Assembly (NCBI RefSeq): GCF_963853765.1
Contig: NC_088858.1
Location: 41,602,001-41,666,000, forward strand
Length of the DNA stretch: 64,000 nucleotides
Reading direction: 5' to 3'
Origin: Magallana gigas
Lineage: Eukaryota
The notes under the pieces: model-generated
Database searches by the model: none
What the model saw: only the letters and a program-made list of their open reading frames with translations
Told to the model about the DNA's origin: nothing
Position numbers and translations under genes: made by a program
Shown here: positions 52,774 to 54,692 of the stretch, piece by piece
Layout of the letters: each line of letters starts with the position of its first letter
Numbering within the stretch: position 1 is the first letter of the stretch

Positions 52774-54692
52774 TTATTTGCGACTAATTTCCAACATGGC
52801 ATCAATAACATCTCCATGCTCTTTTAAGGCTAATATGGCTTCATTTCTACTAATATTAAGCTGTCTCATCATTAATTCTATATCTCTGTCATCCACTCCA
52901 CTTGCATCCTCTGCCTTCTCACCAAACACTTGGAAGACTGCCCTCTTTTGAATGCACTCTTTAATGCTATCAGCATTCACAATTTTGCCTTTGTGGATGA
53001 TCTTTATTTTGTTGACAGGGACCTGTAACTGGTGAGAGAGGAAGCGATATATTTTGTTCCCATCCCAGTCATCCTGAATGCTGATGGTTTGTTTCTGTCT
53101 GTTTGCTTTCACCACTATGTCTGTAAATTCTTTGCTTTTATCTAACACTGGAACATCGTGACATAATTTTTCATTGTCTATGTAGAAAGAATCTTTTCGT
53201 GCAGGAAATTCACCGACTCCTTCTAGTTTGTGTTCTTTTTTATCATATCTTTTAAAGTCTATCACAGGTGAATAGTTAAGACCTTGATCATTCACTGCAT
53301 TAGCTGAAATGAAGCAATAATTCCAATAAATGGACAAGGCATAAAAGACTTTGCCAATTTGTGGCCATTATGAGACAATGAGCAAAGATGAAATGAAATT
53401 TTTACAGACGGATCACAGTAGTACCTGTTGTGCCTGGGTCTTGATAAATAGAACCATCATTTACTGTAAACTTGGAATTAATAGGATTGTGTGTCTTCTT
53501 TTTTTCATCAGTTGAGCTGGCTGTTGTAACTGAACACTCTGTCTTGTGCATGGGCCAATCTTTGGCTTGACATTCTCTGGAGCTATAAGCAAAGAAATTT
53601 TTATGTACATTTCATCTCAAAGTATATTAGATAATCAAGTACCAAGATAGGGCATAATTGAATCTTTAATGTTTAAAGCTAACATTAATTCATAAGACCA
53701 TTTGTTTGGTCGCAATTTTGATTTTGATCATTCCTCAAATGCTACAGGGGTATATATGCTGGTTGAGAAAGTTAGTACGGTTGGTTGATTTTCGATAATG
53801 GCATCCAGATTGCATGGACCTCTAAGTCCGTTTTCCTATGTAAGAACAAAGTTGATAAAAGAATAATAAACTTACTCCAAGAAAATGAAAAAAAAAAGTG
53901 TAAAAATTATCAAAACATTGGAATTATCTTGCAGACCTTAATAATTGTTTAATCTAATAAACACTCCGTTTTCTAACTTCCATGATGCCTCTGTAAAATC
54001 TTCTATAGTAGATTTTACTGAGGAAGCAATAGCATGGAAGATAGAAAATGTGCAATATATTTATTTATAGCGATGTTGTAACTATACTGTAAAACACATG
54101 GGAACATTCTCTAATGTAGCTGCAGATGTGTAGCCCCCAGTCTGCTAAAGGGATGGATGACCTGGGAGCTATAGTTCCTTATTTGACTGAGTTGCAATTT
54201 TACAGTGCACAAAATCTTGCACTAGTTTTGCACTGATTAAATTTAATTCTAAGCTCTGTTCAAATATAAGCTATATTTTGGTAAGTGAAAAAAAAAACAT
54301 GACACAGGGCAGGCAAGGCTTGCCGGGCCCTCTTCTTAAGTTAAAAGGAGAATGATATGAGAACATGTATCTATGCACTAATGTTAGCTTTAGTTATTAA
54401 CAGAGATATAAATAAATAATGTTATTTATGTCTCTGTTATTAACAATGATCAAGTTGCAAGGAAATACATGTATGACGAAAGGAAGAGACGAGAACAAGA
54501 CGTAAGCAGAATTATTGTCTGTTTTTCTGTTAAAAATTTACTTAAATGGATATAACAGGCCAAAAACACCAGATAAATTGGAATACTACACCAGTAATAC
54601 ACTTGTCGGCATCTCGTGCACCTTTTCATCGTTTGTTTCTTCGCTTTACAGATTTTGCAATCATATTCAGCTTCGACGTTCGAATTGTTCAT
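52774..54692 (-). CDS. Uncharacterised zf-MYND + ubiquitin-like + NAC/HYPK-type UBA protein (262 aa)
   Basis: Exons 54692-54592, 53582-53425, 53303-52774 (789 nt, GT-AG, frame-consistent). Splicing exons 1-2 rebuilds a full MYND finger (C12-C15-C25-C28-C34-C38-H46-C50; YYCSRECQAKDWPMHKTEC). The UBL-like segment is IVVKANRQKQTISI..LSHQLQVPVNKIKIIHKGK..VFQVFGE. The C-terminal GVDDRDIELMMRQLNISRNEAILALKEHGDVIDAMLEI resembles the NAC-alpha UBA. Confidence 0.88.

Follow-up and report, generated by a model that had tools for sequence, protein, structure and literature searches.

A MYND–UBL–UBA protein of the oyster with a NAC-alpha/HYPK-type UBA: a candidate bridging adaptor in protein biogenesis or quality control

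The window analysed here is a 64,000-nt stretch of Magallana gigas DNA (contig NC_088858.1, positions 41,602,001 to 41,666,000). Coordinates refer to positions in the window, and all features of the gene described are on its minus strand. The gene has three exons (54692-54592, 53582-53425 and 53303-52774), which encode a protein of 262 amino acids. Coding exon 1 (54592..54692) begins with the ATG at 54692 and comprises residues 1-33 plus two bases of the Cys34 codon, including the first half of a MYND finger with C12, C15, C25 and C28. Intron 1 (53583..54591, 1009 nt) is followed by coding exon 2 (53425..53582), which carries the second half of the finger (C34, C38, H46 and C50, up to 53534) and the start of a disordered linker. 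Intron 2 (53304..53424) is 121 nt long. The first part of exon 3 (53191..53303) encodes the low-confidence end of the linker (residues 87-124), and the exon ends with the stop codon at 52774-52776. Joined together, the exons form an open frame of 789 nt, which comprises 262 codons and the stop, and both introns are bounded by GT..AG.

Logan RNA contigs from two runs, X10 (an oyster metatranscriptome) and X1, contained the joints 53303/53425 and 53582/54592. The open frame, the GT..AG borders and the RNA contigs showed that the coordinates and the two junctions proposed in the initial annotation are exact. The RNA contigs also define the minimum extent of the 5′ UTR (54693..54768): contig 9 of X10 reaches 54768, and record 1 of X1 reaches 54751. 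A 262-aa protein, 99% identical (P0001), is encoded by contigs of 964-1304 nt; these must be cDNA, because the genomic locus measures 1919 nt. The 90% cluster of the protein has 271 member sequences, and the 564-Mb oyster genome contains one full copy of the gene. Intron 1 interrupts the Cys34 codon, that of the fifth MYND cysteine, in phase 2 (TG|GT), and this position is the same in the six species compared (the window, C. virginica, Saccostrea, Pecten, Haliotis and Nematostella). The locus is a real, expressed, single-copy oyster gene. Within intron 1 there are short repeat-derived stretches, which draw unrelated reads (loose ends at 54206/54240 and 54401/54436).

Run X1 contained a further joint, 53582/54622, at a depth of 55.6. 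It results from an alternative donor (AAAAG|GTGCAC) with which the exon ends at 54622 and 30 nt (54592..54621) are lost. The change is in frame: RCTRCRQVYYC is replaced by a single Ser, and the zinc ligands C25, C28 and C34 are gone. The resulting 252-aa isoform (P0002) has 14 member sequences, and RNA contigs show that both isoforms are expressed. The alternative donor sequence is present in C. virginica and Saccostrea and absent from Pecten and Haliotis. Its use would leave the MYND of the isoform unable to fold and so yield the UBL-UBA module minus its address label.

In the full product zf-MYND (PF01753) was matched with 47.7 bits (Pfam cut-off 22.7); the piece encoded by exon 2 alone scored 22.8 bits. 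The eight zinc ligands have the canonical C4-C2HC spacing, and C12, C15, C25, C28, C34, C38, H46 and C50, together with W43, were invariant in 24 relatives from several phyla. The finger is complete, as had been proposed. MYND fingers are modules that bind proline-motif peptides, and Q39 and W43, both conserved, are compatible with a putative PxLxP/PxLE binding function as judged from the sequence. The nearest solved MYND domains, by family profile, were those of SMYD2/3, ZMYND10 and DEAF1 (E 1e-12 for SMYD2, 8e-11 for ZMYND10, 8e-9 for DEAF1), and ETO (CBFA2T1) was matched with E 6e-5. ZMYND10, SMYD2/3 and PHD2 (EGLN1) have the same canonical C4-C2HC finger as the oyster protein but combine it with SET, prolyl-hydroxylase or other domains and have neither a UBL nor a UBA. 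The MYND finger is connected to the C-terminal module by a disordered tether of 70-100 residues, which had pLDDT values of 26-38 across residues 52-123 in the first full-length model. The end of the linker contains a YSPVIDFK motif, which is conserved in alignments of lophotrochozoan sequences.

The module starts with an N-terminal beta-hairpin extension (53128..53190; residues 125-145, FYIDNEKLCHDVPVLD...), modelled with pLDDT 92-97 and with strands at positions 3-5 and 8-10 of the module. It is followed by a ubiquitin-like beta-grasp domain (52921..53127; residues 146-214), which has the order beta-beta-alpha-beta-beta-3(10)-beta in the models. No di-Gly follows the domain; the sequence ...FGEKAEDASG... 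passes straight into the UBA. The oyster sequence alone scored 16.9 bits with the ubiquitin family of Pfam, under the cut-off of 25.4, and 41 of 89 family members matched PF00240 (best E 2.3e-8). The family profile matched the UBLs of ubiquilin-1/2/3 and BAG6 (E 1e-4 to 6e-4). When the model was compared with solved structures, the UBL of hPLIC2 (ubiquilin-2) gave a Z score of 9.4 (rmsd 2.2 Å over 73 residues), AtBAG1 and BAG6 8.9 each and Dsk2 8.7, and the Foldseek probability for the UBL fold was 1.0. The internal UBL without di-Gly, suggested in the initial annotation, was thus borne out by PF00240, by the ubiquilin/BAG6 profile matches and by the hPLIC2 superposition. The match to ubiquilin is unspecific, because the Z scores of the UBL classes lie within 1 unit. 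The UBLs of BAG1 and BAG6 are structurally tied with the best matches, and for UBL4A/Get5 there was a weak Pfam match to Get5_N, far below its cut-off (16.3 bits, cut-off 29.1); the oyster protein has none of the BAG, BAG6 or Get5 C-terminal domains. The equivalents of ubiquitin I44, G47 and K48 are kept (IHKGK), and the I44-patch equivalent, formed by I189, F210 and V212, is conserved.

An acidic ordered connector (52891..52920; residues 215-224, EKAEDASGVD, pLDDT 91) leads from the UBL to the UBA. It is homologous to the pre-UBA segment of NAC-alpha, with which it was aligned (NACA DETGVEVKD). For the module, the first full-length model (9 sequences, pLDDT 63, pTM 0.39) was replaced by an AlphaFold2 model built from 59 sequences, which had a mean pLDDT of 95.5, a pTM of 0.82 and at least 70 in every segment. 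A second, independent model, taken from the ESM Atlas and representing the mollusc cluster, superposed on it over 131 residues (TM 0.87, 1.5 Å). In these models the hairpin, the UBL and the UBA are predicted to pack as a single compact unit, unlike beads on a string. A predicted complex of the module (window:52777-53190:-) with oyster ubiquitin (L010:1495-1722:-) scored 0.01, which gives no answer either way.

Two other interpretations of the module were rejected. That the UBL is a degenerate NAC domain disagrees with the confident model, which shows a helix-containing beta-grasp and resembles UBLs with Z scores of 8-9.4. HMMER carried the alignments with NACA and archaeal NAC into the last UBL strands (VFGE aligned with a NAC strand), and a common origin of the short strand-plus-UBA segment with NAC is possible. 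The DVPxLD motif of the hairpin, whose D and P are conserved in >50% of 59 sequences, was considered as a free PxL(D/E) ligand of the protein's own MYND. It was modelled within the module, with pLDDT >92 and with the MYND absent, and its role is more likely structural, as far as the model goes.

The extreme C-terminus is a three-helix bundle of the NAC-alpha/HYPK UBA type (52777..52890; residues 225-262), with helices at 225-235, 239-249 and 252-261. It matched UBA_HYPK (PF19026) with 29.7-30.6 bits (cut-off 27) and NACA with E 3e-7 in a single-sequence phmmer search and 7.7e-9 with the profile, in line with the UBA type proposed initially. In the PDB the profile found NAC-alpha, archaeal NAC (MTH177, E 1.5e-4) and HYPK (E 3e-3) alone, and no canonical ubiquitin-binding UBA. 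PF00627 was not matched by the oyster protein at E<=1 in Pfam; among 89 family members 79 matched PF19026 and 3 matched PF00627. A mark of ubiquitin-binding UBAs is an MGF/MGY loop between helices 1 and 2. The oyster protein has LNISRN in this place, not MGF/MGY. In published structures the partners of the NAC-alpha and HYPK UBAs are Naa15 and SRP54, not ubiquitin: both UBAs bind the Naa15 solenoid, that of NAC-alpha also binds SRP54, and docking occurs by an exposed hydrophobic UBA patch laid on parallel helices (PMC11372111).

The likeness to these proteins is confined to certain elements. NACA and archaeal NAC share with the oyster protein the UBA, the preceding acidic segment and the location of the UBA at the extreme C-terminus. 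The oyster protein lacks the NAC dimerisation domain (no NAC-domain Pfam match was found in it or in the family members), has a UBL and a MYND instead, and implies no ribosome-anchoring NAC-beta partner. HYPK has the same PF19026 UBA and is likewise small and non-catalytic, with a disordered N-terminal part, but it has neither MYND nor UBL, and the oyster UBA scored lower with HYPK than with NACA. The region before the oyster UBA is a beta-grasp with an alpha-helix, and the long pre-UBA helix by which HYPK contacts Naa15 is missing.

A search with the family profile returned 131 representatives at E<=1e-10, most of them aligned across both UBL and UBA; MYND was detected by Pfam in 40 of 89 members. 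The layout is colinear, with an N-terminal MYND, a variable linker and a conserved module of ~138 residues ending in ...DAIL..GNK. Members occur in molluscs, brachiopods, nemerteans, annelids, echinoderms, hemichordates, cnidarians, amphibians and gar. Those retrieved by name include, among lophotrochozoans, bivalves, gastropods, Lingula, Lineus and Lamellibrachia, and elsewhere starfish, Saccoglossus, Nematostella, Exaiptasia, Montipora, newts, frogs, gar and the protist Ancoracysta. The named members that were retrieved, about thirty in all, included no sequence from a mammal, an insect, a nematode or a fungus. With colinear orthologues in at least seven animal phyla, the family is ancient in animals, from sea anemones to salamanders, and it is uncharacterised. 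All named relatives are called 'uncharacterized' or 'MYND-type domain-containing protein' or are misnamed. One Exaiptasia member is listed as 'ZMYND10' and one Nematostella member as 'ubiquitin carboxyl-terminal hydrolase 15', both names apparently derived from the MYND alone; 'NAC subunit alpha-like' is a further wrong database name. Full-text literature searches for the domain combination returned unrelated reviews only and no paper on the family, and an ESM Atlas feature search returned only the protein's own mollusc cluster. These names and searches agree with the initial remark that no characterised protein is known to combine these domains.

In the sister proteins P0150, P0164, P0167 and P0171 the same UBL-UBA module lies behind a TPR domain, which takes the position of the MYND. 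This makes the module a portable unit that occurs behind different partner-binding heads. The best solved relatives of the sister TPR were RPAP3, HOP/STI1, SPAG1, PP5, HIP and SGT, and the TPR of P0150 keeps, by eye, the K/N/N/K/R arrangement, which we take to be the clamp pattern of co-chaperone TPRs. UBAs of the NAC type were also found in a SINA-type RING ligase (P0170) and in a kinase (P0139); a role in the ubiquitin system is therefore possible.

A gene for cytosolic HSP90 lies head-to-head with the MYND-UBL-UBA gene, 4 kb away (from 58686 onward), and it does so in C. virginica too. No HSP90 gene was found within 10 kb of the orthologue in Saccostrea cucullata, Pecten maximus, Haliotis asinina or Nematostella, which makes the adjacency a matter of local synteny. 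As it is shared with C. virginica only, it was rejected as a functional clue. The heat-shock-element pattern GAAnnTTCnnGAA occurred 3 times in the window, where 0.89 occurrences were expected, and as many were reached in 8 of 100 shuffles. The two intergenic matches (56936 and 58457) are nearer to HSP90 than to the start of the MYND-UBL-UBA gene. A shared heat-shock promoter was rejected, since the matches are not enriched and lie toward HSP90.

Several explanations of the protein have to be weighed. A chance frame, a mis-spliced transcript or a decaying lineage-specific gene could be invoked because the abundant contig of one run represents the MYND-breaking isoform, but the conservation data refute such a non-functional locus: colinear orthologues occur in at least seven animal phyla, the zinc ligands are invariant and the module is highly conserved. 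The conserved intron position and the 271 sequences of the 90% cluster also speak against it, and we give it next to no credence. The main reading of the initial annotation was a Rad23/Dsk2-type shuttle. A protein of this kind, to which ubiquilin also belongs, would bind polyubiquitinated clients with its UBA, helped by the MYND in choosing them, and dock on Rpn1, Rpn10 or Rpn13 with its UBL. Such shuttles are defined by the combination of UBL and UBA, the best UBL structure matches are shuttle and co-chaperone UBLs (ubiquilin-2, BAG1, BAG6 and Dsk2), profile matches extend to ubiquilin-1/2/3, the I44, G47 and K48 equivalents are conserved, and the SINA RING ligase relative also has a NAC-type UBA. 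Ubiquilin/Dsk2 and Rad23 are, like the oyster protein, non-catalytic and combine a UBL of the same fold with a C-terminal three-helix UBA fold. However, the oyster UBL is internal, not N-terminal, the MYND is extra, and the UBA is outside the ubiquitin-binding class, with no PF00627, PDB matches to NAC and HYPK only and LNISRN instead of MGF/MGY. In the shuttles UBL and UBA are parted by long flexible linkers, STI1 or XPC-binding domains, whereas in the oyster protein they are adjacent, fused in the model by 10 ordered residues into a predicted rigid unit. The ubiquilin match is also unspecific, with the UBL classes tied. The proposed Rad23/Dsk2-type shuttle is weakened by these comparisons, and we consider such a mechanism quite improbable.

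An HSP90/HSP70 co-chaperone adaptor, whose MYND would bind a PxLE/PxLxP motif of a co-chaperone and whose module would couple the complex to triage or to the ribosome, overlaps the explanation preferred below but makes the chaperone system the primary partner. MYND precedents exist: PHD2 binds p23/FKBP38, and ZMYND10 works with FKBP8-HSP90. In its favour, the sister proteins have a TPR of the HSP70/HSP90 co-chaperone class instead of the MYND (with the P0150 clamp pattern seen by eye), ZMYND10 is among the nearest solved MYNDs, and HSP90 is the head-to-head neighbour here and in C. virginica. Two papers deal with the PHD2-MYND/p23 and the ZMYND10-FKBP8-HSP90 interactions (PMC6916684 and PMC6044906, respectively). 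Against it, the adjacency does not extend to Saccostrea, Pecten, Haliotis and Nematostella, the heat-shock-element matches are not enriched and lie near HSP90, away from the start of this gene, and the MYND is no closer to ZMYND10 than to SMYD2/3. We infer a chaperone link with slight support from the TPR sister proteins and none from the HSP90 neighbour; an adaptor of this kind is unlikely. By analogy, the protein might also be a nuclear co-regulator, with the MYND recruiting co-repressors of the N-CoR/SMRT type and the UBL-UBA module serving as an interaction platform. The MYNDs of ETO, BS69 and DEAF1 work in nuclear co-repressor complexes, and a co-activator role has been reported for alpha-NAC. 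The DEAF1 and ETO (CBFA2T1) matches are significant, and in one source a relative bears the label 'NACalpha-BTF3-like transcription factor', but this label is automatic, Pfam revealed no DNA-binding or chromatin domain in the oyster protein or the family, and the SMYD and ZMYND10 MYNDs outscored those that bind co-repressors. We regard a co-regulator as distinctly improbable. The co-repressor MYNDs (ETO, BS69 and DEAF1), taken for themselves, would point to a process other than that of a bridging adaptor.

We infer the binding partners and the cellular process of the protein from these comparisons: its most probable role is that of an adaptor that bridges two partners in protein biogenesis or quality control. 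The MYND finger would hold one partner by a PxLxP/PxLE-like motif, and the UBL-UBA module would dock on a second machine, which may be a helical-repeat factor from the nascent-chain or chaperone apparatus, such as Naa15 (in NatA), SRP54 or another with a comparable surface. The I44-patch equivalent (I189, F210, V212) could provide a second contact or be the face that holds the UBA. As the UBA is of the NAC-alpha/HYPK kind, a helical-repeat partner is likelier than polyubiquitin. Of the two destinations named in the initial annotation for clients handed over by the protein, the nascent-chain machinery thus fits better than the proteasome. UBA domains switch specificity easily, which weighs against the bridging adaptor. 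In known proteins most of the affinity for Naa15 and the ribosome comes from the NAC domain and from the long contact helix of HYPK, and the oyster protein has neither. In its full form, as a non-catalytic adaptor of 262 residues that favours a helical-repeat nascent-chain or chaperone partner over polyubiquitin, the bridging explanation is one we prefer tentatively.

A bolder extension, which we think unlikely, is that the family stands next to NACA and HYPK as a third, overlooked branch of the NAC-alpha-type UBA proteins and docks on NatA (Naa15) or SRP54 at the tunnel exit. The rigid module would sit at the exit, where the MYND would bring a proline-motif partner or the TPR would bring HSP70/HSP90, and chaperones would in this manner be coupled to co-translational processing. 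Such a family, possibly older than animals, might have been lost from amniotes, flies, nematodes and yeast and for this reason not have been studied, and in the oyster alternative splicing would act as an on/off switch for the MYND head.

UBL-UBA proteins and the NAC/HYPK/NatA/SRP network have a central place in protein quality control and in co-translational processing. What is new here is a conserved, single-copy family that, according to the models, joins a UBL rigidly to a NAC-type UBA behind a MYND or a co-chaperone-type TPR. The absence of mammalian, insect, nematode and fungal sequences among the retrieved members would explain why the family is unstudied. Several of its database names are wrong and can be corrected, and Nematostella, newts and oysters are tractable carriers of the gene. 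If the module binds ubiquitin and the proteasome, the family would represent a new class of shuttles with an unusual UBA; if its target is NatA, SRP or the ribosome, the tunnel-exit machinery would gain a new player.

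The three exons of the gene on the minus strand (54692-54592, 53582-53425 and 53303-52774; read from 52500-55000) join into a 789-nt frame, which encodes 262 amino acids and ends with a stop codon at 52774-52776. Both introns are canonical GT..AG introns with pyrimidine-rich acceptors. The window has 33% G+C and contains no N; the genome (564 Mb, 29 contigs) carries a single full copy of the gene, the sole other match being UBA-only (32 bits, another contig). The closest named relatives of the product are Ostreidae proteins with 63-68% identity.

The splice model is expressed. 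Both junctions proposed in the initial annotation (54592/53582 and 53425/53303) were present in Logan contigs of X10, an oyster metatranscriptome RNA run, and 53303/53425 was found also in a 3.6-kb contig of run X1, together with an alternative joint, 53582/54622. Raw reads of the poly(A) RNA-seq runs X21 and X22 covered exon 3 in the orientation that a standard stranded library would give for a gene on the minus strand; they were too few for joints to show. The database protein P0001 (262 aa), which represents a 271-member cluster, is 99% identical to the model (three substitutions); its contigs (964-1304 nt) are shorter than the genomic span (1919 nt) and must therefore derive from spliced cDNA. 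The 173-aa members of this cluster stem from DNA contigs, on which exon 3 was called as an open frame. RNA contigs with the coding sequence (X1 record 1, 3574 nt; X10 record 6, 3265 nt) run about 2.6 kb beyond 52600, to about 50020, which implies a 3′ UTR of about 2.7 kb or else a contig merged with a transcript from downstream; there were no minus-strand open frames of at least 90 aa in that direction except 48862-49167. Two stretches of intron 1 (54205-54240 and 54401-54436) are matched by RNA contigs or reads of X1, X10 and X22 that run into unrelated sequence on both sides, which suggests fragments of a dispersed transcribed repeat and not exons of this gene.

The alternative joint, seen in X1 at a contig depth of 55.6, defines a second isoform. 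In P0002 (252 aa, 14 members) TMKSSRECQ stands in place of the P0001 segment TMKRCTRCRQVYYCSRECQ, exactly as produced by use of a GT 30 nt upstream (AAAAG/GTGCAC; exon end 54622). The loss is in frame and takes with it three of the finger's eight ligands for zinc (C25, C28, C34), so this isoform cannot build a MYND finger. C. virginica and Saccostrea cucullata share the cryptic donor sequence; Pecten and Haliotis lack it.

The complete MYND finger, the internal ubiquitin-like domain lacking di-Gly and the NAC-alpha/HYPK-like UBA noted in the initial annotation were all borne out. When exons were translated separately the zf-MYND match was split (17.4 and 22.8 bits); the full product scored 47.7 bits against a cut-off of 22.7. 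Aligning 24 relatives from several phyla showed no variation in the eight zinc ligands (C12, C15, C25, C28, C34, C38, H46, C50) or in W43, and the closest solved MYND domains are those of SMYD2/3, ZMYND10, SMYD1, DEAF1 and ETO. The UBA matched PF19026 (UBA_HYPK) with 30.6 bits (cut-off 27), and the Pfam scan of the protein gave no match to the general UBA family. In PDB searches the single sequence matched NAC-alpha (E 3e-7), and a nine-sequence profile of the C-terminus matched only NAC-alpha (7.7e-9), archaeal NAC (1.5e-4) and HYPK (3e-3); the NAC-type similarity extends into the acidic stretch directly before helix 1.

For the UBL, Pfam gave 16.9 bits on the oyster sequence alone, under the cut-off of 25.4; PF00240 was matched by 41 of 89 relatives (best E 2.3e-8), and the family profile matched the UBLs of ubiquilin-1/2/3, BAG6 and BAG1 with E values of 1e-4 to 9e-4. 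Both structural models have the order beta-beta-alpha-beta-beta-3(10)-beta. Foldseek matched chains of ubiquilin, ubiquitin and SUMO with a probability of 1.0 (TM by target 0.7-0.77), and VIA-align against 48,161 representatives placed the ubiquilin-2 UBL on top (Z 9.4, 2.2 A over 73 residues), followed by the UBLs of BAG1, BAG6 and Dsk2 (Z 8.7-8.9). Since all of them lie within one Z unit, the comparison assigns the fold and not the subclass. The sequence has no Gly-Gly after the last UBL strand, which rules the domain out as a conjugatable modifier.

A first full-length model, built from 9 sequences, had pLDDT 63 and pTM 0.39, with residues 52-123 disordered (pLDDT 26-38). AlphaFold2 modelling of the C-terminal 138 residues with 59 sequences gave a mean pLDDT of 95.5, a pTM of 0.82 and no segment below 70, the confident part including the 10 residues of the connector and, at the N-terminus, a beta-hairpin extension of 20 residues. 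In a chain of two domains, a pTM of 0.82 implies a confident prediction of how UBL and UBA sit relative to each other, and the ESM Atlas model of the mollusc cluster, made by a different method without alignment, agreed with it (TM 0.87, 1.5 A over 131 residues). The two domains are thus predicted to form one compact, rigid module. Structure searches found no solved structure or other Atlas cluster with this composite arrangement. Conservation among the 59 sequences peaks in four stretches: VK.NK.KH in the strand 1-2 turn, IP..KLKLIHKGK at the equivalent of ubiquitin 42-48 (with I44, G47 and K48 equivalents kept), KAVFQA.GE in the last strand, and DI...M.QL.V.RN.A..AL...GD..DAI in the UBA.

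When 1.84 billion representatives were searched exhaustively with the profile, 406 matched at E<=1e-3, of which 131 reached E<=1e-10. In about 100 representatives (50% identity) the match spans both UBL and UBA, in nearly all cases at the very C-terminal end of a protein of 180-310 aa. Pfam found UBA_HYPK in 79, ubiquitin in 41 and zf-MYND in 40 of 89 relatives; many of those lacking MYND correspond to a last exon read as an open frame on a genomic contig, as do the oyster entries of 173 aa. The family is widely conserved: named members come from bivalves (Crassostrea virginica, Ostrea edulis, two Saccostrea species, Pecten maximus, Mizuhopecten, Argopecten, Solemya, Potamilus, Ruditapes), gastropods (Haliotis, Nucella), a brachiopod (Lingula), a nemertean (Lineus), an annelid (Lamellibrachia), starfish (Acanthaster, Asterias), a hemichordate (Saccoglossus), cnidarians (Nematostella, Exaiptasia, Montipora), amphibians (Pleurodeles, Lissotriton, Pyxicephalus, Staurois, Eleutherodactylus, Bufo), a fish (the gar Lepisosteus) and a protist (Ancoracysta, one transcript). 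The named members retrieved, a sample and not proof of absence, included no mammal, bird, teleost, arthropod, nematode, fungus or plant. The intron splitting the MYND domain has identical place and phase (TG/GT, fifth Cys codon) in the window, C. virginica, Saccostrea, Pecten, Haliotis and Nematostella, which supports orthology.

A cytosolic HSP90 gene lies head-to-head with the oyster gene, about 4 kb away (multi-exon, plus strand, 58686-61421 and beyond); its exon open frames cover the HATPase N-domain, charged linker, middle domain and C-terminal domain. The same pair recurs in C. virginica (locus L001), but not in Saccostrea, Pecten, Haliotis or Nematostella, and we set it aside as a functional clue, as lineage-specific synteny. 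In Saccostrea cucullata no gene was called within 9.8 kb upstream of the orthologue; downstream, C. virginica and Saccostrea have a WD40 gene. Pecten maximus (L003) and Haliotis asinina (L008) share a downstream channel gene of cyclic-nucleotide-gated type (Ion_trans, cNMP_binding, CLZ), and this microsynteny predates the oyster arrangement. The Nematostella orthologue (L004:10001-11012) is head-to-head, at 139 bp, with the gene of a 386-aa USP/UCH deubiquitinase (L004:2228-9862), and itself has no UCH domain, despite its NCBI name 'ubiquitin carboxyl-terminal hydrolase 15'.

Heat-shock-element matches were not enriched in the window and were located on the HSP90 side. A 27-nt element with a heat-shock-element-like core, CGAATCTTCCCGAA, occurs twice (56928-56954 and 57706-57732, 778 nt apart), and a perfect GAAnnTTCnnGAA lies at 58457-58469, about 230 nt ahead of where HSP90 coding sequence begins; all three probably belong to the HSP90 promoter or to an intron in its 5′ UTR. 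Between them and the gene, 300-900 nt upstream of its 5′ end, G/C runs of 13-19 form inverted repeats (55039-55069, 55306-55336, 55500-55519 and 55606-55630; for example GAAAAGAC-G18 versus C18-ACTTTTTC, 237 nt apart) beside a 27-nt tandem duplicate (55431-55486). They yield spurious poly-Pro/poly-Gly open frames and look like a foldback or MITE-like insertion.

The UBA class bears on function. HYPK and NAC-alpha have homologous C-termini; the NAC-alpha UBA docks on helices alpha4-6 of Naa15 and on SRP54, resting an exposed hydrophobic patch against two parallel helices, and that of HYPK binds Naa15 at its C-terminal TPRs (PMC11372111). All well-characterised members thus dock on helical surfaces of tunnel-exit factors and not on ubiquitin, a mode which makes polyubiquitin a less likely partner than a factor on the nascent-chain or chaperone side. 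The argument is one from homology, over a domain of 40 residues, and is weak on its own; the oyster protein also lacks the NAC domain and the contact helix that supply much of the affinity in NAC-alpha and HYPK, respectively. The class is used well beyond these two proteins, as seen from P0139 (698 aa; a protein kinase followed by three or four UBA_HYPK) and P0170 (410 aa; SINA-type RING and zinc finger, then two UBA_HYPK). In four distant metagenomic matches, probably protist proteins (P0150, P0164, P0167, P0171), the UBL-UBA module stands behind a three-repeat TPR, whose best solved relatives (RPAP3, HOP/STI1, SPAG1, PP5, HIP, SGT) are of the HSP70/HSP90 co-chaperone class. Occurring behind MYND or TPR, the module is a portable unit on differing partner-binding heads.

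We favour, at a little short of an even chance, a bridging adaptor: the MYND finger would hold a proline-motif partner, and the module would dock on a second machine, of the kind bound by NAC-type UBAs or otherwise in protein biogenesis or quality control. An overlapping and narrower proposal, an adaptor specifically for HSP90/HSP70, draws on the co-chaperone-class TPR of the sister proteins and seems unlikely, given the lineage-specific HSP90 adjacency and the lack of heat-shock-element enrichment. A ubiquitin-proteasome shuttle of Rad23/Dsk2 type is unlikely, since known UBAs of this class dock on Naa15/SRP54 instead of ubiquitin (PMC11372111) and the domain does not match the general UBA family. 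That the protein is a nuclear co-regulator is very unlikely, and that the gene is non-functional hardly credible.

Each domain is already known, and the proteins stand in databases as unnamed predictions: 'uncharacterized', 'hypothetical', 'MYND-type domain-containing', or misnamed from one domain, as in Nematostella (the hydrolase name), Exaiptasia ('ZMYND10'), and Lingula and Bufo ('NAC subunit alpha-like'). The suspicion that no characterised protein joins MYND, UBL and UBA agreed with our literature search, which found no description of the combination. Nor did it find any account of MYND joined to a UBL fused with a NAC-type UBA, or of how widely animals have kept this architecture. In kind, the protein stands with non-catalytic UBL-UBA adaptors and with proteins that have a NAC-alpha-type UBA.
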